Shown here: in pieces, positions 21,686 through 53,790 of the stretch
How the letters are laid out: each line of letters starts with the position of its first letter
How positions within the stretch are numbered: position 1 is the first letter of the stretch
Assembly (NCBI GenBank): GCA_025558095.1
Contig: JAIVFI010000039.1
Location: 248,001-312,000, forward strand
Reading direction: 5' to 3'
DNA: 64,000 nucleotides
From: Hyaloraphidium curvatum SAG 235-1
Taxonomy: Eukaryota > Fungi > Monoblepharomycota
Made by a program: the position numbers and the translations under genes
Notes under the pieces: model-generated
What the model saw: the letters and a program-made list of their open reading frames with translations, nothing else
What the model was told of the DNA's origin: nothing
Databases searched by the model: none

Positions 21686-21784
21686 TTGTAAAGTGCGGCG
21701 GGTTTGTCTCCCTCGGCGGCAGCCGTGCCGCGCACTACCGTCTTTTGCGGCAAAGAAGCAACTTCGAGTCATCTACTGGCCCGC

Positions 21785-22217
21785 ATGGGCAGACCATCTT
21801 ACAATATCAAGAGCAAGCTGCTGTATGCAGTGCGGAAGGCGATTCGGGGTTCGGCTTCGTGCGTGGCGACGCAGCTTGGCGTCCATCGGTCATTGCTTTC
21901 GCGCTGGCATTCCGAAGCCCCACGAACTTGCCAAAGCCCCGGGAAGGATCACTCGGCGCGATGTCCCGCATTATGTGCGGCTGCCGTACGAGCGTGTCGA
22001 GGTCCACTTGGCCCAATGGGTACAGATTCGGCGGGTTGCCGGCATCGTAGTCAACCTACCGCGATTGCAGTGCGCGAATGGCGGAGCTGGTCTTGGAGAC
22101 GACACGGCAGACTCCCAGTTGGAATGTCAACGTTCATTGGGGGCGCAAGTGGTTCTCTGGGTTCCTCAGACGGCGGGGGCTCTCGCTCCGCGTGCCAACC
22201 ACGGGATTCGCATCTGA
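21785..22217 (+). mobile_element. Remnant of a pogo/Tc5 (CENP-B-like) transposase DNA-binding region
   Basis: Three frames give MGRPSYNIKSKL...VATQLGVHRSLLSRW, then YERVEVHLAQWVQIRRVAGIVV, then KWFSGFLRRRGLSLRVPT. This is two HTH domains with frameshifts and no DDE domain. Confidence 0.7.
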
Positions 22218-22499
22218 CCGGCCGCGGCCGTCGCTGAAGCTGGTTCCAACGGGATCTTCTTGCTTTCTCGAGGAGGCTAGAGGTTAGCGGCGACGATTCC
22301 CACGAGTTCGCGGAGCTGCGTGTGCAGTCCATGATGGCGAAACTTTGGACTCCTGGACCGCTGCGAAGAAGTTGTACACAATGCCATTTCTCCAGCCTAG
22401 TACATCAGCGCGCGGCGCGAACTTCTGCATCGGTGCTTCGCTGCCCGGAAACATCCTGCTCAAGGCGTTCTATCGTGGCCCGTGCGAGAGCAATGTTCC

Positions 22500-23575
22500 T
22501 CCGTATCTTCAGTGCCGGCCCACATCCCGACCATGACCGTGCGCAAGACGCTCATGTTCGCCGCAGAGTGCCGCATGCCGAGGCACTCGACCAAGGAGGA
22601 GCGCATCGCCCGCGTCGACGACGTCTTTGCCGGCCTCAATCTCACCAACGCGCAGAACACGCCCGTTGGCGACGAGCTCATCCGCGGCGTCTCGTCGGGC
22701 GAGAAGAAGCGCACCATGGTCGCCACGGAGATGATTGCCTGGCCCAAGATGCTGTTCTTGGGGGAGCCGACTTCGTGCGTTCACACCTGCCCTTGGTCTC
22801 GCAAGGAACTCGCTCACCCTGCAGCGGTCTCGACGACCATGGTGCTCGCTTCACCATGGAGCTCGTGCTCAAGTACGTCAAGGCCTTCTTGCAGGTCATC
22901 GTGATCCACCAGCCTGCCGAGTCGGTTTTCAAGCTCTTCGACAACACGCTGCTCATCTGCGGGCGAGGGTCGGACCTGCTACCCCGTCGCCGCCGCCGAG
23001 TCGTATTTTACGACGATGGGCTACCCGACGCTGAGGCTGCAGAACCCGATTGAGCACTACCGTGGGTACCTTGTGGGTACCTCGCCCCCTGATCCGTGCC
23101 TGCTCTTCTGACCCGGAATCCGCAGTCGACGTCATCTCCGCCAACGCCCTCGCCGCCTCGCAGTACTACGAGCGCTCGCCGCTCGCCGCCGCGAACATGG
23201 ACGCGATCCACCGACTCAAGGCGCAGCAGTACGGGTCCGTGCGCTACTCCAGGTACACCGTCGAGCGGCCGTGGTACAACCAGATCGCCCTCGTCGGCCA
23301 CTGCTGCCTGCTGCGCTGCTGGCGCAACCCGTCGACCTCGTGGTGCAGGCCCTTTATGTTCATCGGTCTGCTCTTTGGAGGCCTGTTTTACAACGCGAGC
23401 TTCTACCAAATGCCTCGCGCTCACCTTTACCGTCCATCCAGCTGCAAAACGATGTCCAGGGAATCCTCAACCGCCGTTCATGTGACGTCGACATTCGGTT
23501 CCTTCCCATCTTCGTCGCCCTCGCCGCCGTGCCGCAGTTCTCGGGAACCACGAGCTGTACTTGCCGGAGCATGAA
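22500..23575 (+). pseudogene. Degenerate ABCG/PDR transporter fragment
   Basis: TMTVRKTLMFAA, NTPVGDELIRGVSSGEKKR (mutated signature), LFLGEPTS-GLD (Walker B D to G), IHQP. No Walker A. Frames are broken. Confidence 0.8.
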
Positions 23576-24787
23576 TGCCTGGATGGCACCAGTGCCAACA
23601 ACGTCACGGATAGAAGACCCCGCAGCATCGAGGACGCGGACCAGCCCGAGGACGACTTCTGGGAGGAGACGGTTGCGATAGTGCCCATCCCTCATCTATC
23701 GCACTATCGCAACGGTCACGGTCCTGAGGCTGCACGTGGCGAACTTGAAGGCCAACCTGGAGGAGGTGTGGTCGAGATCGTGAAGACGAAGACGTGGGAG
23801 TTTCTAGGTCTCGTACCTGTACCTGCACGCTCTTTTGTGATACCGGATTCTAATCCGGGCTTTACAAGCGGGCAGATGCTTTGTCCAAGTTTTGTCCGGG
23901 GGCTTGTAACGCTGAGGCCACAAAGCGTGACGGTGTGCGTCGAATCACCCACCACACCATCACATCGGCCCCATCTGCCGGCCGGCAACGGCGATGCGGG
24001 CTCGCAAGAAGCGCAAGAAGGAAGTCTCGGTAGCGCGCTCTCGGTGAGGGCGCTGTCTCGGTGAGCCGGCCTGCTTGGCGGCCGCGGCACGACGTCGGAC
24101 GCCCACTGACCCCCCCACCCCCCTCCCGCACCGGATTCGACCCTCCTCGCCCTCCACGCCCTCGAAAGCGTATTGCCGGCCATTACGCGAGAGCCACATC
24201 CACGACCGGCAACCAAACCCTCCGGCTCACCGAGGAGGTGGGGGACACGGAGGCGCCGTGGACCTGGCTCACTCTTCCCTCTCCTCGACCCTTGCTTCTC
24301 CTTCAGGATCTTACACACCGTTGTCTTTCATCGTGAGTGGCAGCGTTTCGACATCATTGCCCTGTGAGCTGATCCTTCTGTGACCCTGCTCCGACGACAG
24401 TCGACGCGCGGCGTCAAGGCCGACAGCACGACCGCTCTCCATCAAGTTGCGCATCCACAACGCTGTTAAGATCAGCAGTGGAGGTGCACGCGGATGCTCA
24501 AGCTGCTGCTGCCTGCGCCGAGCCGATCTTCACCGATGGGGCCAGGAACTTCATCTAAACATACCTGTCCGCAGGGTAAGCGGCGGCAGCTACGAAAGTG
24601 TGCGCATGTTGACCAGCATTCCTTTTCCTACGATCTCAACGCTGACGGGCCTGATTTTTGATCTGCAAACGGATGATGGCGCTGCGGTGCTATTGTGTGG
24701 CATATGTGTTGCTTGTATGCAAATTACAGTATAGAGCGTCGATCGATTGAGCGTCGATCACACCCACGTCCGTCGTGAGAGATCAAT

Positions 24788-45870: not shown

Positions 45871-47880
45871 TCACCCTCCCTTCTTCCACGCCTCGACGAT
45901 CCACGTGAGCCCCACCGCGAACCCGTACCTGACCTCCATCGCCCTCTCCACCGCCCTCTTGTTCCCCTCGGAATTCCCCACGTCGTGGAACGCAAACACC
46001 GTCCCCCTGTCCGACCGCAGGAACCTCCCCCAGTCCTTTGCATGCGCCGCGATCTCCTCCTCCCCATGCGCCGCGTCGGTCCACACGAGCTCGTACCCCA
46101 GGTCCGGCACCGTCTCCCCCGCCACCACCGTGACGTCTTCGAGCACCCCCGCGCGGGCGAGCCCCGAGCGGAGGTAGGACAGCTGCCCGCCGTGCTTTTC
46201 GAAGGTCTCCCGGAACGTCGGAGGGTGCGTGCGGTACAGCTCCCCCGGGACCGAGACCAGCCTGCGCCCGCGGCTGTGGAGCGTGGCCTGCGACGCGGGG
46301 TCCGTGGCGTTGTCGTACGACCAGTAGTACGGCGCGTGCGATTCGGGGAAGCCGGATGCGGATTGCATCGTGTCCGCGCCCACCGGGAACAGATCCGCAG
46401 TGACGAATGTCCGTCCCGGTACGCCCGATGCCTGGATGCCCTTTGCGATGCACACGGTGGAGCGCCCGCGGTACGGGCCCTGCTCGTAGACGTTGCCCCG
46501 TGTGCGGCGGGCGAGGATGAAGAGGAGGCAGCACTCGCTGTCGAGCGTCCAGCCCTCGGGGAGCAGCGAGGCAAAGGGGCGGAAGCAGGTGGGCATGCCG
46601 GCGTCGAGCTCGCGGTCGATTTCGGCGCGGATGGCGCGGAGGTCGAAGCGGGGGGGGTCCGATGCGTCAGGTGCTGCCGGGCGGTTGCCGTCGCCGATCG
46701 GCGCCGCAGGAGCCTCCGCAGCCTTTGTGTAGGCCGTTGCGTCCACAATGCTGTCCGTCGCCGCATTGCGGTCCTCCGCTGCGCTACGGTCCTCACTCGG
46801 ACCCTGCTCTGCAGCGTCCGGGTACCATTTCCGCAGCACCCTCCGCACGAGCTCGTCGACGTGGCCTTCTTCCTCCTCCCTCCTCCTTTTCAGGTGATCC
46901 CTGACCAGGCCCAGAGTGCTCTTTGCCGACGGCAGATCCTCCTCACCGTACGCGATGCCGTACTTGTAGTCATCCTCGGCCGTCGCCAGCCACTCCTCCT
47001 TGGTCACCCCCGGCACCTTTTCCACGACCGCCGGACACCCCGCCGACGCCGCCTCCACGGCCCGGAAAGTCAGCGGATCCCGAGTTACAAAGAGCTCCGC
47101 GCGCGAAAACAGCTCCAGCCGGCGGCGCTTGCCCTCGTCCTTGGAGAGCAGGAAGGCGCCGCGCGCGCGGGCCTCGGCCGCGGGGTCGACCTTGGGGATC
47201 GCCACGGTGCGGTTGCCGGCGCGCCAGCGGCTCTTGCGGGCAAAGTAGATGGTCCCCTTTCGGGGGCGGCGGTCGCCGCCGGGCAGGCCGCGGTAGTGGT
47301 CGGGGTAGTAGTCCGTCACGCGGAGGTGGAAGGGGTCCTTGTGCGCCAGCTCCGCGCACACGCCCATGGCGTAGCACGCGATCAGGTCCTCCGACGCGTC
47401 GTAGGATGCCGCATCCGGGCCGCTGTTGGCGCCCGGAAAATACAGCATCCAGCGCACCACGCGCTGCGCCTGGAGCGGGTTGCCGAAGATGATCTCGGGG
47501 TACACGACCACGCCGTCGCGCGGGTCGATCCACGCGGGCAGCCCCGGCGTCGCGTAGCCGGAGTTTGTGGGACTGCCAGCGGACTGGCCCCACGGCACGA
47601 TGAATGCGGCCGACGGCTCGCCGCGCGCCGAGAAGCGCCTGTTGAGGCGGTCGACCAGCGCGTGCAGCACGGTTGTGCCGCCCGAGGACTCGGTGTACGG
47701 CGGCGCGACAACCGCGAAGAAGAGGCCGCCGGGGAGGGCGGCCGGGCGGGCGCCGGGCGGGGTTGGCGGGGGAGCCGCGGCGGCGCGAGGCGGGGGCAGC
47801 CGGGGGACGCGGCCCCACGCCGCGAGGGCGAGCAGCAGCGCGAGTGCCAGAGAGGCGAGCAGCACCCGCAGTCCAGCCAT
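45871..47880 (-). CDS. Signal-anchored WavQ-like glycosyltransferase-like domain fused to a class I SAM methyltransferase (Methyltransf_24-like), intronless
   Basis: N-terminal TM segment; SGGTTVLHALVDRLN, VVYPEI..GNPL.A.RVVRWML, DPLTF..VEAA..GC, KYGIAYG; then EQGPYRGRST, VWTDAAH, FAFHD. Confidence 0.75.
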   Translation of the reverse strand: MAGLRVLLASLALALLLALAAWGRVPRLPPPRAAAAPPPTPPGARPAALPGGLFFAVVAPPYTESSGGTTVLHALVDRLNRRFSARGEPSAAFIVPWGQSAGSPTNSGYATPGLPAWIDPRDGVVVYPEIIFGNPLQAQRVVRWMLYFPGANSGPDAASYDASEDLIACYAMGVCAELAHKDPFHLRVTDYYPDHYRGLPGGDRRPRKGTIYFARKSRWRAGNRTVAIPKVDPAAEARARGAFLLSKDEGKRRRLELFSRAELFVTRDPLTFRAVEAASAGCPAVVEKVPGVTKEEWLATAEDDYKYGIAYGEEDLPSAKSTLGLVRDHLKRRREEEEGHVDELVRRVLRKWYPDAAEQGPSEDRSAAEDRNAATDSIVDATAYTKAAEAPAAPIGDGNRPAAPDASDPPRFDLRAIRAEIDRELDAGMPTCFRPFASLLPEGWTLDSECCLLFILARRTRGNVYEQGPYRGRSTVCIAKGIQASGVPGRTFVTADLFPVGADTMQSASGFPESHAPYYWSYDNATDPASQATLHSRGRRLVSVPGELYRTHPPTFRETFEKHGGQLSYLRSGLARAGVLEDVTVVAGETVPDLGYELVWTDAAHGEEEIAAHAKDWGRFLRSDRGTVFAFHDVGNSEGNKRAVERAMEVRYGFAVGLTWIVEAWKKGG

Positions 47881-48013
47881 CCTCCCGCGCCCACTCCACT
47901 CGCTGGTCGCCGGGGTGACTCCCCATCCCTTGCTGTCCCTCCCTGTCCCCTGCATCCCGGCCCCCGCCCGATCCCCCAAACCCCAAACACACACTCCTCC
48001 CCATCGCCCCGCC

Positions 48014-48098
48014 ATGGCCGGGCTGCGGTGCGCATCCGACGCATTCGACTCGCGCCTGTTCGGCTTCGGCGTGGCGCGCCTCGCCGTGCTCCGCGGCG
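48014..48098 (+). pseudogene. Detached N-terminus of the WecD-WecE fusion gene
   Basis: MAGLRCASDAFDSRLFGFGVARL matches the WecD-type N-terminal motif (W/F-DS-xx-FG-xxx-ARL). It ends in CCGCGGCG, in frame with 50497. Confidence 0.7.
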
Positions 48099-48219
48099 GA
48101 GGCAGCATTCGGCGTCGAGCGTCCAGCCCTCGGGGAGCAGCGAGGCAAAGGGGCGGAAGCAGGTGGGCATGCCGGCGTCGAGCTCGCGGTCGATTTCGGC
48201 GCGGATGGCGCGGAGGTCG
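48098..48219 (-). repeat. 122-bp direct duplicate of 46524-46645 (start of the methyltransferase domain)
   Basis: Near-identical sequence; encodes DAECCL instead of DSECCL. Confidence 0.95.
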
Positions 48220-48429
48220 GTTTAGTCAGAACTTTCACTCAAAAGCCCAACTATAGTGAAGGCTATGCACATTGTTGCGGAGCTACCAGCGAATCCCGGG
48301 CGGCCTGGTTGAAGCATGGCGCGTCGTACATCCAATCGAAGGCAAGGAAAGTGTGCGGTGCTGAGCCAGTTGCCGCTGACGTTGGTGTAGGCCGCTTCCT
48401 GCAGCCGCGGCAGAAGCTCGGGAATGACG

Positions 48430-49185
48430 AGCCGCATCGATGGCCGTCGCGTGGGCCCAGCGGCTGATGGAATGCCTCGCGTCTGCATTGGCACGGCAGG
48501 GATCAGCCTCGGAGCACCGGCATCCGCCCCGGCGCGACGCACCGTCGACGGCCTTTGCGGCCAGCAGCAGCGACACGGCCGTCACCGCGTAGTGCGACCC
48601 CACCGCGAAGCTCGCCTCGGTCCTGACCCTCCGCCTCAGTTCCCGCACGTAATCCATCGCCCGCGACACCACGTACGCCGACGGCCTCGCGTGCGCGAGG
48701 AGCCGCCCCAGGTACGCGGCGAAGGCGGGCTGGTCGGAGGAAAAGAGCGTCGGGTGCCTCGCGTGCGCCCCCGCGGCGGAGGGGGGGTAGCACGATGCGT
48801 AGACGGAGGAGATGATGATGGAGACGAGGAGGTCGGCGGGGTAGGTGTCGGGAGGGGGGTGCGTGCAGCACGCGGGGGGGTGCGAGCGCGAGCGGAGGTG
48901 CGAGGGGGTTGCGTGGGGCGGTGGGTGGAGGGCGGGGAGCGAAGCGAGCGCGGGTGCATCGCGTACAGGGGGTTGCGCCGGGGGAGGGAAGGGGGAGGCG
49001 TCCTCCGAGTCGTCGTCCGAGTCGACGCGCGGGGGGGAAGCGGGGTCTGGGCGCCGCAGCCAGCCCGGTGCGGGCGAGAAGCACGTGCTGTCCGGCGAGC
49101 TCCCCTCCTCCGAGGCCCCCTCGCCCCCCTCAGAAAGTCCCAGTCGCCGACGGCGGTGGCCGATGACGACGTCGAGCGGCAGCAC
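48430..49185 (-). pseudogene. 3'-truncated Pcl/Pho80-type cyclin fragment
   Basis: FAAYLGRLLAHAR...AMDYVREL...SLLLAAKAVD-DARHSISRWA, then an abrupt switch before the conserved E..FL helix. Confidence 0.65.
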
Positions 49186-49380
49186 TCCGCGTCGCCGGGG
49201 AGCGGCTGCCGGCCCCCGTGAGCGGCGGACCCGGCCTCGCGCGCCAGCAGCTGCCTGGCCTGTGGCGCGGAAGGCAGCCCGCGCAAGCGGCGGAAGCGCA
49301 TGAGCTCGCGCTTCCAGCGCTCCACCCGCGGGCGGGGTTCGCCTGGCACGGGCACAAGCGGCGCGCCGCGCGGGGTGCTG

Positions 49381-49780
49381 ATGGAGCGCGGCGCGGTGTT
49401 CCGCGCGTACCCACGGCGCTCGAGCTGCGGCGGCTGCGCGGCGCGCTCGTCGCGGGGTTCTACGCGCTGCCGGCCGGCGACCGCGAGCGGTGGCACGCGC
49501 TGCTCTTCGTGCCGCCCGCCTCGGACGCGCCCTCGCCCTACGCAGGCGCCGTGTTCCGCCTGCTGTTCGCGCTGCCCGACGACGGCCCGATCGCTGCGAC
49601 CGTGCTCAGCATGCCGTTCTTCCACCCGCTGGCGGACCCAGGCTCGGGGCGGCTGCACCTGCCGCCAAGGCTGCTGCCAGAGGGGGCGGCGCACCTGGAC
49701 GACTTGGGGCGGGTGTTGCGGCGCGCGTTTTCGGACGACTTTCTGGAGCAGCTGGAGGAGGGGGATTTGCCTTTTTCGGG
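49381..49780 (+). pseudogene. UBC/UEV (AKTIP-like) fragment with an early frameshift
   Basis: GFYALP...WHALLFV...SPYAGAVFRL...FHPLADP.SGRL. No catalytic Cys. Confidence 0.6.
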
Positions 49781-49839
49781 TGTGTGTGACCTCCGTTTGT
49801 GTTTGTGGCCAGGCGTCGTCTGATCGCCCTCGCGTCCAG

Positions 49840-50086
49840 CTCCCCGAAGCCCTTCGACCGCCACGACTGGTTCTTCGACCGCTGCGGCAAAAAGACGGTC
49901 CGCTACGTGATCGACTACTACGCCGGCCCGGACGAGGCACCCGGGCAGCCGACCTTCAGCGTGGACGTGCGGCCGGCGCTGGATTCGGCGGGGGCCGTGG
50001 CGGACAGGTTCAAGGTCGCCTTTGGGGGGCTGTACGACGGGTTCAGGGCAAAGTGGGCGGGGGCACCGACGTCCGAGTCGAAGTAG
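49840..50086 (+). pseudogene. Orphan last exon of cytochrome c/c1 heme lyase
   Basis: [13 protein letters not shown]...VRYVIDYY...DVRPALDS, preceded by a CTGAT...CAG acceptor. No 5' exons in the window. Confidence 0.85.
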
Positions 50087-50496
50087 GGGACGAGGAGGCC
50101 GCCTCGGGTACATTTCGGCGCGGAGCCGCGCCGGTTATTCGTGATTCACCATACAGTGCTTTCCATGTTTCCCATTGCGCGTCCCGTTCCGCCGCGCAGG
50201 TATCATTCCAGTCCCCTCACGTGCGCCACGACCACCATCGCGTCGTCCACGCGGATCCAGCCCCCGAAAAACAGCTCCGAGTTGCGCTCCCGGTCCGCCA
50301 ACCGTTTTGCCAGCTTCTCCAAAAGCCGGCCGTTGGTCCCCCCGCACCGCGTCCGCACCGCCGTCGGCCCGTCCTCCTCCTCCTCCTCGCCATCCGGACT
50401 ACCGGATCCGGGGGCGTGCCTCGCGGCAGCCGGCAACCCCCTCTCGTCCGCCGCGAACTCGGCCTCCCCGATCCGGTCCCACTCTTCGCCAGCCCA

Positions 50497-52348
50497 CCGC
50501 GGCGCCGCTCCGGGGGATATTTCGGACGCATTGAGGGACGCAATGGCCGACGGCGCTCGCCTCGTCTACATCTTCGGCAGCGAGGAGGCGGCAACCGACG
50601 ACGGCGGTCCCTCGCTGCCGGGATTCGCCCTGGACCGCCGCACCGTGTACGAGGCACGCACGGGGGACCTCGACTGGGCGGCGCTCGAAAAGGACGCCGT
50701 CGGCGCAGCACCGGGCATCTCCTTCGCATCGGCAGCCGCCGACGCCCCTCCGGCCGGCATCGAGGAGCTCGCCTTCGCCGCCGGCGAATGGTCGCGCTAC
50801 AAAACCGATCCATGGCTGCCCGCCGCGTGCTTCCGCAAGATGTACGGCGCCTTCCTGGCCAACTCCCTCAACAGGTCCATCGCCGACGAGGTGCTGGTCG
50901 CCGCCGCACCGTGCGGCAAGCTCTGCGGCCTCATCTCGTTCGGCGTCGACGGCACCGAGGGCAAGGTCGTCCTCCTGGCCGTCGATCCCGACCGCCGCCG
51001 CGCCGGCATCGGCAAGGCCCTCCTCGCCCGCGCCCTCCTCTGGGCGCGCGACCACGGCGCCGCCACCATCAGGGTCGTCTCGCAGGGCCGCTCCTTCCGC
51101 CTTCCCTCGCAGGCCCTGTACGAGCGCGCGGGCCTGCGCATCGCCTCGCGCACGCCCGTGCACCACGCCTGGCTGCCGCAGCACATCCTCGAGCCCGCCG
51201 CCGTGCGCGCCGACGTCGGTCCGATCCCGTTCCTCCGCCCGTACGCGGCCGGCGGGGAGCTGGCCCTGGCCGCGCGCGCGATCGGGTCGCCCGACTCGGC
51301 CGAGTTCCAATCCCGCTGCGTCGCGTTCCTCTCCTCCATGCTCGGCCCCGGCTGCGAAGCCGTGCACCTCACCCCCTCGTGCACCGCGGCCCTGGAGCTC
51401 GCCGCCCTCTGCGCAGACCTGGCCCCGGGCGACGAGGTGATCGTCCCGGCATTCACCTTCCCCACCACCGCCTCGCCGTTCGCCCTCCGCGGCGCCGTCC
51501 CCGTCTTTGTCGACGTGCAGCCCGCCACCCTCAACATCGATCCCGCGCTGGCCGAGGCCGCCGTCACCCCCCGCACCCGTGCGATCGTCGCCGTGCACTA
51601 CGCCGGCGTCCCCTGCGACATGGACGCCCTCGCATCCATCGCCGCCCGCAACGACCTGCTCCTGATCGAGGACGCCGCGCAGGCCCTCTTCTCCACCTAC
51701 AAGGGCCGCCCCGCGGGCTCCCTCGGCGACGCCGCCGCCTTCTCCTTCCACAGGACCAAGAACGTCTCGTGCGGCGAGGGCGGCGCGCTGGCCCTCCGCC
51801 GCGCGGGGATGGCCGCCGGCGCGGCCGAGGCGTGGGACAAGGGCACCGACCGCCGCGAGTTCCTCGCCGGGCGCGCGGAGACGTACCAATGGACGCGGCT
51901 GGGGTCGTCGTACGCGGTGCCCGAGACGTCGGCGGCGGTGCTGCTCGCGCAGCTGGAGCGCGGGGAGGCCGTGTGCGAGGAGAGGAGGGGTGTGTGCGGG
52001 AGGTACGCCGAGGGGCTGGCCGATCTGGTGGCCGTGGGGAGGTTCGCGGCATGCGAAGTGCCGGAGTGGTGCGAGCCCAACGGTCACATCTTCTGGATAA
52101 TGCTTCCCTCGGCGGAGGAGCGGGCGCGATACGAAAGGGTGCTGGCCGAGGCGGGCGTGTCGACGGCGCGGCACTACCAGCCGCTACACCTGTCGCCGGC
52201 GGGGCAGAGGTACGGCCGCGCGCACGGCGCGCTGCCCGTCGCGGAGAGGGCGGCGGAGGCGCTGCTGAGGCTGCCGGTGTGGCCGGGGATGAGCAGGGCA
52301 GAGGTGGCGCACGTGATCGCCGCGGTGAGGCGGGCGGCGGGGGCGTAG
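50497..52348 (+). CDS. Fusion of a WecD/RffC-like GNAT acetyltransferase and a WecE/RffA dTDP-4-amino-4,6-dideoxyhexose aminotransferase, intronless; N-terminus displaced
   Basis: GNAT: SRYKTDP...MYGAF..NS, LLAVDPDRRRAGIGKAL, VVSQ, LYERAG. Aminotransferase: LTPSCTAALE, PGDEVIVP, VHYAGVPCDMD, IEDAAQ, SFHRTKN (PLP lysine), KGTDR, GSSY, HYQPLH. Confidence 0.9.
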
Positions 52349-52396
52349 ATCCCCAGGCGGGGAGCAGGATGCGTTGGCGAGGGTACGAGGCGATGG

Positions 52397-53527
52397 TTAT
52401 GGGGGTCGCTGCCCCGTAGATCGATTTCCGCTCTTGCGCCGCGCGGAATGGGCGATCGTCCGGCCTTCCTTCTGTTCTTGTGCGGGTCCTGCTTTGTCCG
52501 AGTACCACTTCTGCAGCACCCTCCGCACAAACTCGTCCAGGTGGGCGTCCTCCGCCCGCCTCCTCTTCATGAGCTGCTCCTTCACCATGTTGAGCGTGCT
52601 TTTCGCCCAGGGGAGGTCCTCCTCGCCGTACGCGATCCCGTACTTGAACTCGTCCTCCGCGGTCGCCAACCACTCCTCCTTAGTCACCCCGGGCACCTTT
52701 TCCACGACAGCCGGGCAACCAACCGAAGCCGCTTCCACGGCGCGGTAGGTCAGCGGGTCCCGCGTGACGAACTTGGCGGCGCGCGAAAACAGCTCCAGCC
52801 TCCTCCGCTTCCCCTCGTGCGGGTCCAGCAGGAAGGCGCCACGCGCGCGGGCCTCGGCCGCGGGATCGATTTCGGGGAGCGTCACGGTGCGGTTGCCGGC
52901 GCGCCAGCCCGTCTTGCGGGCAAAGTAGATGGTCCCCTTGCGCGGCCGGTCGTCGCTCGGCAGGCCCCGCGAATAGTCGGGGTAGTGATCCGACACGCGG
53001 AGGTAGACGGGGTCCTTGTGCGCGAGCTCGGAGCAGAAGCCGGCCATGTAGCAGGCGACCATGTCCTCCCACCCATCGTAAGCCGCCGCCTGCGGGCCGC
53101 CGTTGAGCCCCGGGAAGTAGAGCATCCAGCGCACCACGCGCGGCGCCTTCAGTGGGTTGCCCTCGATGATCTCGGGGTACACCACCACGCCCTTTGCGGG
53201 ATCCAGCCACGGGGGCAGCAGCGGCGACGCGTAGCCGGGATTCGTGGCGTGCCCGCCGCCCCACGGCACCACGAACGCCGCCGAGGGCTCGCCGCGCGCC
53301 GAGTAACGCCTGTTGAGCCTGTCGACCAGCGCGTGCAGCACCGTGGTGCCGCCCGAGGACTCGGAGTACGGCGGCGCGACGACTGCGAAGAAGAGGTCCG
53401 GAGGAAGCGACGGCGGGGAGGGCGGGCAGTCGGCGCCCACTGGCGCCCGGCCGAGCACGGCAAATCCAGTGACTGCAGCCGCGACCGCTGCGGCGCCCAT
53501 GAGCGGGCGGAACCACGGCGGCGTCAT
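52397..53527 (-). CDS. Second WavQ-like glycosyltransferase-like paralog, without the methyltransferase domain
   Basis: Colinear and highly similar to the 46830-47730 region, with its own N-terminal TM segment. Confidence 0.75.
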   Translation of the reverse strand: MTPPWFRPLMGAAAVAAAVTGFAVLGRAPVGADCPPSPPSLPPDLFFAVVAPPYSESSGGTTVLHALVDRLNRRYSARGEPSAAFVVPWGGGHATNPGYASPLLPPWLDPAKGVVVYPEIIEGNPLKAPRVVRWMLYFPGLNGGPQAAAYDGWEDMVACYMAGFCSELAHKDPVYLRVSDHYPDYSRGLPSDDRPRKGTIYFARKTGWRAGNRTVTLPEIDPAAEARARGAFLLDPHEGKRRRLELFSRAAKFVTRDPLTYRAVEAASVGCPAVVEKVPGVTKEEWLATAEDEFKYGIAYGEEDLPWAKSTLNMVKEQLMKRRRAEDAHLDEFVRRVLQKWYSDKAGPAQEQKEGRTIAHSARRKSGNRSTGQRPP

Positions 53528-53606
53528 TGGCGGAACTCGCGTCGGTGATCGGCGCCCCCGCGTCCCCAGCGCGGCCGGCCGCCACCCCTTCCCTGCCCAC
53601 GATCCT

Positions 53607-53790
53607 ATTGTGCCTAAAGTGGAAGACAACAGTGCATCCAATTTCTCTCATCGCATGTCCAACTCGAAACAATTCTGTGGCACCGGTACTCGGTCTCAAT
53701 TGTGCTCTAAAGTGGAAGACAACAGTGCATCCAATTTCTCTCATCGCATGTCCAACTCGAAACAATTCTGTGGCACCGGTACTCGGTCTC
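53607..53790. repeat. Tandem duplication with a period of about 93 bp
   Basis: CTAAAGTGGAAGAC...GGTACTCGGTCTC at 53614-53697 and 53707-53790 are identical. Confidence 0.95.

Follow-up and report, generated by a model that had tools for sequence, protein, structure and literature searches.

Analysis of a 64,000-nucleotide stretch of the genome of the fungus Hyaloraphidium curvatum SAG 235-1 (hereafter the window; positions 248001-312000 of contig C39 in an assembly of 31.9 Mb and 55 contigs, the others being designated likewise) revealed a gene for a fused bacterial-type sugar enzyme, a WecD-like acetyltransferase joined to a WecE-type aminotransferase, which is split near its start by an insert of 2398 bp. 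The insert is a mosaic of six fragments from five other places of the same genome: the neighbouring gene, contig C16 (twice), contig C33 and two places 18 kb apart on contig C27. It is bounded by two copies of an 8-bp direct repeat, CCGCGGCG. Its anatomy suggests an origin at a DNA double-strand break, and we consider it probable that a one-off repair event with templated or captured filler DNA split the ancestral gene. The insert would thus most likely be a known kind of mutation, not a new mobile element or a genetic switch.

Excision of one copy of CCGCGGCG together with the intervening DNA places 28 N-terminal codons back in frame with the WecD-like/WecE frame and gives a protein of 642 amino acids (aa), from the start codon at 48014 to the stop at 52346-52348. 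This joined model is a translation only, and its two parts were searched separately. At present, the frame from ATG 48014 enters the insert and stops at 48254. The first in-frame ATG past the insert, at 50543, would yield 601 aa, 41 residues short, and the public annotation puts the protein start at 50840 (P0001, 502 aa; an exact look-up of P0001 on other contigs gave none on record). The start, the stop and the in-frame ATG agree with those of the first-pass annotation of the window, as does the ATG of the divergent neighbouring gene (47880, 133 bp off). With a G+C content of 65-80% across the region there are long open frames in all six frames, which therefore say little by themselves. The frame after the insert matched the DegT/WecE aminotransferase family PF01041 (2.2e-83) and, over 51251-52345, passed the curated cut-off of the WecE model NF008687 (dTDP-4-amino-4,6-dideoxygalactose transaminase; 400.7 bits, cut-off 375). 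On the WecD models NF008212 / TIGR02382 (dTDP-fucosamine acetyltransferase) the post-insert part failed, with 49 bits for a cut-off of 219; the uninterrupted homologue P0056 likewise reached only 89 bits on the WecD profile, aligned over positions 7-221 of 232. The best solved relative is E. coli WecD (2FS5). Since the WecD cut-off was missed, we call the acetyltransferase part a WecD-like GNAT and not a certified equivalog. The 28 N-terminal residues alone had no match among the Pfam or NCBIfam models, so that their assignment rests on an alignment of homologues (A1) and on a paralogue; a phmmer search against solved structures aligned the GNAT core alone.

Four metagenomic homologues are fused and uninterrupted (P0056, 645 aa; P0121, 652 aa; P0122 and P0123), and the genome itself encodes an intact paralogue of 652 aa, 49% identical, at C21:391298-393127 (L010:1408-3366). 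The motif FD-S/T-x-L-F/L-G found in the stranded codons also begins P0056, P0121, P0123 and the paralogue, P0122 being without that end. In alignment A1 with the four fused homologues, 48014-48097 occupies columns 1-33 and the frame after the insert continues from column 38. Across the join, the R..P spacing equals that of P0121 and is one residue off both P0056 and the paralogue L010. Judged by these alignments, the join is seamless against the fused homologues and the in-genome paralogue, which bears out the first-pass claim that excision restores a 642-aa frame with its N-terminal motif. The C21 paralogue has a visibly less G+C-biased amino-acid make-up and is not adjoined by any paralogue of the split gene's neighbours. 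Past the insert, the frame runs for 1.84 kb with no stop or frameshift relative to the paralogue and the bacterial profile, unlike the mosaic pieces, which hold several uncompensated indels of 1-2 nt. An unbroken remnant frame beside an indel-bearing mosaic suggests, at most, continued selection on the remnant.

The 8-bp repeat reported at both ends of the insert by the first-pass annotation was confirmed, and by an independent route. The + strand of the window has 14 copies of CCGCGGCG, so that its repetition says little by itself. However, the borders of the insert are also set by homology to other loci, the first piece starting from 48098/48099 and the last reaching to 50496/50497, and these mosaic ends (48099 and 50496) adjoin both 8-mers exactly. 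For this region, the chance of flanks identical at 8 of 8 positions is 8e-5 at fixed positions and 1.5e-3 with a slack of +-2 nt. An extra 8 bp would shift the reading frame, so that the second copy was not part of the ancestral coding sequence and arose with the insertion.

A search of the insert against the organism's own genome found one other genomic copy of each copied piece, with identities of 90-97.5%. The features are listed in the following table, together with Nei-Gojobori estimates of the synonymous divergence (dS) between pieces and sources and of the ratio of nonsynonymous to synonymous divergence (dN/dS).

Features of the split gene, its insert and its neighbours (positions in the window; sources as contig:positions)
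Feature	Position	Strand	Source or basis	Identity	dS	dN/dS
Left neighbour gene, divergent; source of piece A (46524-46645)	45874-47880	-	open frame, G+C at third codon positions (GC3) 0.86; weak Methyltransf_24 match only
Severed first 28 codons (+1 nt) of the WecD-like/WecE fusion gene	48014-48098	+	FDSRLFGFGV motif aligned to homologue and paralogue N-termini
Left copy of flanking duplication CCGCGGCG	48091-48098		direct reading
Piece A	48099-48219 (base 48098 common with duplication)	+	window 46524-46645, neighbouring gene, same orientation	97.5%	0.036 (only 3 differences)
Orphan filler, 67 bp, lower G+C	48220-48286		no other copy in assembly
Piece B (as a whole)					~0.27-0.28	0.04-0.13
Piece B1	48287-48393	-	C16:72999-72891, inverted	91-94%
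Piece B2	48393-48435	-	C16:72687-72645, inverted	91-94%
Three unmatched bases	48436-48438		sourceless
Piece C	48439-49366	+	C33:78484-79410, same orientation	91%	0.16	0.42
Piece D	49364-49771	+	C27:475557-475966, same orientation	90%	0.25	0.23
Piece E	49770-50496 (homology reaches 50497)	-	C27:458143-457426, inverted	95%	0.09-0.19	0.10
Right copy of flanking duplication CCGCGGCG	50497-50504		direct reading
Remainder of gene: WecD-like GNAT acetyltransferase domain and WecE-type pyridoxal phosphate (PLP) aminotransferase	50505-52348	+	PF00583, PF01041
Right neighbour gene	52400-53647	-	paralogue of left neighbour

Only 70 bp of the insert are sourceless, including the 67-bp orphan, for which the own-genome search returned the orphan alone. 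Adjoining pieces overlap by 1-3 bp: 1 bp between the left duplication and A, 1 bp between B1 and B2, 3 bp between C and D, 2 bp between D and E, and 1 bp between E and the right duplication. Piece A derives from the left neighbour gene, 1.5 kb upstream and on the same strand. The sources of B and C are open frames belonging to no Pfam family, whereas D is part of a hypothetical protein of H. curvatum (P0124, 100% identical) which, by eye only, resembles the ubiquitin-conjugating-enzyme fold. Piece E comprises the final exon of a gene for cytochrome c haem lyase (+ strand here, 49813-50086; PF01265, 7.7e-23), the 3' end of a PP2C-like gene (- strand here) lying tail-to-tail with it, and the intergenic DNA. 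A segment that covers two convergent genes with the spacer between them does not stem from one messenger RNA, so that piece E was copied from genomic DNA. Between B1 and B2, 203 bp of the source were skipped; a removed intron, as in filler made from complementary DNA, was considered and rejected, since there is no AG at the end of the skipped stretch and no interruption of the source frame within it, and since piece E came from DNA. We also discarded a loose contig end at 50372 as a sign of splicing or inversion, as it reflects a graph join via a (TCC)n run shared with L003:947. The whole-insert search of the genome found the separate sources only, the composite itself occurring once. Terminal inverted repeats are absent from the insert, its scanned open reading frames (ORFs) contain no transposase or mobile-element domain (the only Pfam match being the haem-lyase fragment), and an Rfam scan of 47500-51000 gave no match.

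Contigs of three public sequencing runs of the same organism were placed on positions 47001-52500. Those of one run, X1, span both the left (47001-48143) and the right (50455-51193) junction with zero mismatches, and a contig of a second run, X2, spans the left one (48029-48219), again with zero mismatches; the junctions on which the first-pass annotation depended are thus bridged by short-read data. Contigs of the source loci diverge from the window exactly at 48219, 48439, 49771 and 50497, and of 16 variant letters seen within the mosaic, 15 agree with the assembled sources. Window and source versions therefore coexist, which excludes a chimeric assembly. No contig joining 48098 to 50505, as expected of an empty or spliced form, was seen among these contigs, which drop rare forms and may come from the sequenced strain itself.

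Run X1 is labelled 'RNA?' and is very uneven in depth (270 for the neighbour gene, 23-54 for the split gene). Over 48543-48704 it contains the source version of piece C alone, where a DNA library would give both versions, and we therefore read it, with reserve, as RNA. If so, the remnant gene would be transcribed from at least 50455, inside piece E. A 142-nt X1 contig equals the window's own copy of piece D (49610-49751) with zero mismatches and a depth of 156, the source version having at least 10 differences there; if X1 is RNA, part of the insert would be more strongly transcribed than the remnant gene. At 51830/51831, two X1 contigs stop and start exactly, with unlike letters beyond that are absent from every locus fetched, perhaps because the graph is broken there by a repeat or a variant. 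The first-pass annotation had, in one of its two readings, described the gene as knocked out. The N-terminus is indeed severed, but the term may be too strong for a gene with an unbroken 1.84-kb frame and probably-RNA contigs from 50455 onwards.

The differences between pieces and sources are unevenly spread over the source codons, amounting to 5.2%, 4.1% and 12.2% at the first, second and third positions, and some of those in piece E recur at every third base. A neutral copy compared with a constrained source is expected to show a dN/dS of at least ~0.5. As the observed ratios are below this value (see table), most of the divergence probably accrued while both lineages were functional genes, and the direct templates would therefore have been alleles or copies at ~0.1-0.25 dS from the loci now assembled. 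No template version was found in the read contigs or in the protein collection; for the source of piece D, a collection of 5.8 billion proteins gave the assembled allele P0124 and a 43% relative only, with no second allele. Piece A, whose template is tightly linked to the insertion site, suggests a neutral age of the insertion of only ~2-3%. These figures would be most simply explained if the population outcrosses and is very diverse, so that unlinked alleles coalesce deeply; alternatively, the locus may have been introgressed or paralogues may have been lost.

We propose the following course of events. An ancestral uninterrupted gene of ~642 codons would have encoded a WecD-like N-acetyltransferase fused to a WecE-type dTDP-4-keto-6-deoxyhexose aminotransferase. 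After a chromosome break between codons 28 and 29, repair synthesis or end-joining would have serially copied or captured stretches from no fewer than five other sites in this genome, in the order of the gene 1.5 kb upstream, the source of the 67-bp orphan, C16 twice, C33 and the two places on C27, successive pieces being joined via microhomology of 1-3 bp. The 8-bp duplication might have arisen by fill-in of 8-nt staggered ends, for example where a hAT transposase had cut or excised, or alternatively by synthesis re-entering the original locus 8 bp upstream of its point of departure. The outcome would be a single-copy, immobile patch of 2398 bp leaving the first 28 codons stranded behind the promoter, while the remaining frame was kept and is probably transcribed from within the patch, yielding at best an N-terminally truncated protein; the intact C21 paralogue could cover the function. 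The first piece coming from 1.5 kb away on the same strand argues for a patch built in place. The first-pass annotation had already suggested a target-site-like duplication around filler or captured DNA severing the N-terminus, and the single-copy mosaic with 1-3 bp overlaps agrees with it. Nothing supports its other suggestion, an excisable switch: a recombinase was not found, the read contigs include no empty or joined form, and the fragments have decayed by a few per cent.

The hAT route has a concrete candidate in the genome itself. It contains a hAT family of at least eight copies, including C2:633683-636541 and at least seven further loci (L029-L033). The five copies read are ~2.86 kb long, 99.3-99.8% identical and carry an intact 844-aa frame between the ends TAGGGTGCCTGGCA...TGCCAGGCACCCTA, and three of the five show clean 8-bp target duplications; the family is probably still active. 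With so young a family making 8-bp duplications, a hAT cut or excision site becomes a tangible candidate for the break.

Filler DNA is known from plants, and yeast breaks acquire mitochondrial fragments, retrotransposon complementary DNA or fragments from multiple loci. The insert has the features by which filler DNA is recognized, namely identifiable genomic templates, 1-3 bp microhomology, no element ends and a unique composite. Like break filler (for which see PMC11372161 and PMC11724301 on insertions at yeast breaks and PMC2567098 on nuclear mitochondrial DNA (NUMT) insertion), it is single-copy, lacks the hallmarks of an element, and consists of pieces with templates in the genome, set head-to-tail with 0-3 bp of microhomology, plus one orphan. 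It departs from usual filler in being large for a natural germline event (2.4 kb, six pieces), in its perfect 8-bp duplication, in the coding region having stayed open, and in pieces that match alleles not found in the genome. It also resembles the products of microhomology-mediated break-induced replication (MMBIR) or fork stalling and template switching (PMC2621351) in its serial switches, the first of them nearby on the same chromosome, its mixed orientations and its microhomology; such models also allow a small duplication where synthesis returns, like that at the insert. Those models were developed for human copy-number variants with mostly nearby templates, whereas four of the five known source places lie here on other contigs.

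Several points weigh against the proposed reading of the insert. The mainly synonymous divergence (dN/dS 0.04-0.23 for B, D and E) is not predicted by copying from these loci followed by decay; the copying model must further suppose that other alleles served as templates. The reading also presumes a single step, yet C and D (90-91% identical) match their sources much less well than do piece A (97.5%) and the haem-lyase exon (98%). The sequence gives no way to tell a staggered cut from an offset re-entry. Finally, the runs come probably from the assembled strain; this excludes a mis-join but does not provide independent evidence from the population.

The unequal identities (A 97.5%, haem-lyase exon ~98%, B 91-94%, C 91%, D 90%) might also be taken to mean that the patch grew stepwise, a single fragile spot having received several insertions or ectopic gene conversions, one by one, over an extended period. 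We consider this very unlikely. The flanking duplication is present at the outermost borders only, the inner junctions showing merely 1-3 bp overlaps; A and E, the least diverged pieces, are the outermost, and a later arrival would have needed an exact landing between duplication and core on both sides. Besides, differing allele genealogies of unlinked sources account equally well for the unequal identity.

A non-autonomous hAT-like transposon, a Helitron or a Pack-type element carrying captured host fragments seems very unlikely to us. In favour of such an element, the duplication has the same 8-bp length as those of the genome's own hAT family, Helitron-like genes occur at three loci of the genome, and fragment-capturing Helitrons are known in fungi (PMC4289320); moreover, a chimeric array of several unrelated host-gene fragments recalls Helitron or Pack-MULE capture. 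However, both termini of the insert are plain copies of ordinary genes, the ends differ from TAGGGTGCCTGGCA, and there is no trace of the hAT ends TAGGGTGCC.../...GGCACCCTA, so that the likeness to hAT insertion or excision sites stops at the 8-bp duplication and, lacking hAT ends, inverted repeats and transposase in the insert, hAT could at most have supplied the break. Helitrons have TC...CTRR ends with a subterminal hairpin, integrate between A and T and make no flanking duplication, whereas the insert runs GGAGG...GCCCA between G and C and has one of 8 bp, the wrong kind for a Helitron; it also lacks the termini of Helitrons and Pack-MULEs. The composite is single-copy, no other locus has so far been seen to have two neighbouring pieces in that order, and the leftmost piece comes from the adjacent gene, as if built in place. 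The first-pass annotation likewise described an insert devoid of terminal inverted repeats, GT-AG ends and transposase, in agreement with our findings for the repeat-defined borders and the ORFs scanned.

We give as little credence to the idea that the insert is a very long newborn spliceosomal intron, the full-length protein still being made. In Daphnia, short direct repeats bordering newly gained introns have reportedly been ascribed to break repair, and here the 28-codon exon and the downstream frame are both intact. There are many in-frame GT/GC...AG pairs, such as the GC at 48093 with the AG at 50492, which would add just two residues; however, the 398 in-frame pairs found are a chance expectation and uninformative, and the repeat-defined borders themselves have no GT/GC-AG pair. 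At 2.4 kb, the insert far exceeds the usual length of fungal introns. The public annotation (P0001) does not splice it out, and the contigs run through both junctions with no joint over the insert, although this comes from one probably-RNA run and contigs that drop rare forms. An assembly artefact, by a chimeric long read or a mis-join inside an intact gene, can practically be dismissed: chimeric reads do look like mosaics of distant loci, but the pieces are never identical to those loci (90-97.5%), contigs from two studies bridge the left junction and one of these runs the right one with no mismatches, and both versions are present as separate sequences in the read contigs.

The split gene is flanked by two genes that are paralogues of each other and read in the same direction (46816-47752 against 52496-53424, 80% identical in nucleotides and 75% in amino acids), so that the split gene lies between direct repeats of ~930 bp. 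The left neighbour and the split gene, which are divergent, both begin with MAGLR (47866-47880, - strand; 48014-48028, + strand) in partly different codons, either by chance or by a small inverted duplication of the start region.

The window contains a second patchwork at 21736-24731, with segments 95-98% identical to C13:652368-653063 and C6:887362-888959, and it encloses an 86-89% copy of an ABC-transporter fragment (C31:500585-501729; PF00005). It is largely common to the C6 locus, which lacks ~900 bp of it. We rejected it as a clean empty-site case relative to C6, since it is a shared mosaic with an internal length difference and no flanking duplication; consequently, it provides no second measure of the duplication length. 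It is conceivable, though we hold it doubtful, that patchwork insertion is recurrent and possibly ongoing in H. curvatum, perhaps triggered by hAT, and that the lost-allele templates reflect outcrossing with a very high silent diversity (~0.1-0.2) or introgression from a sister lineage.

Most of what is known of complex templated insertions comes from tumours or from breaks engineered in yeast and plants. The insert provides a clean natural record of one, with base-level borders and identified sources, in a gene whose original form can be inferred from the paralogue and the homologues. The public model of 502 aa describes the truncated remnant of a gene of ~642 aa, and the bacterial-type sugar pathway of this fungus has its fused enzyme in one damaged and one intact copy. 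The fragments themselves may be regarded as dated fossils of alleles at unlinked loci, and as such they offer a testable means of assessing population diversity or introgression in a fungal lineage that has hardly been studied.

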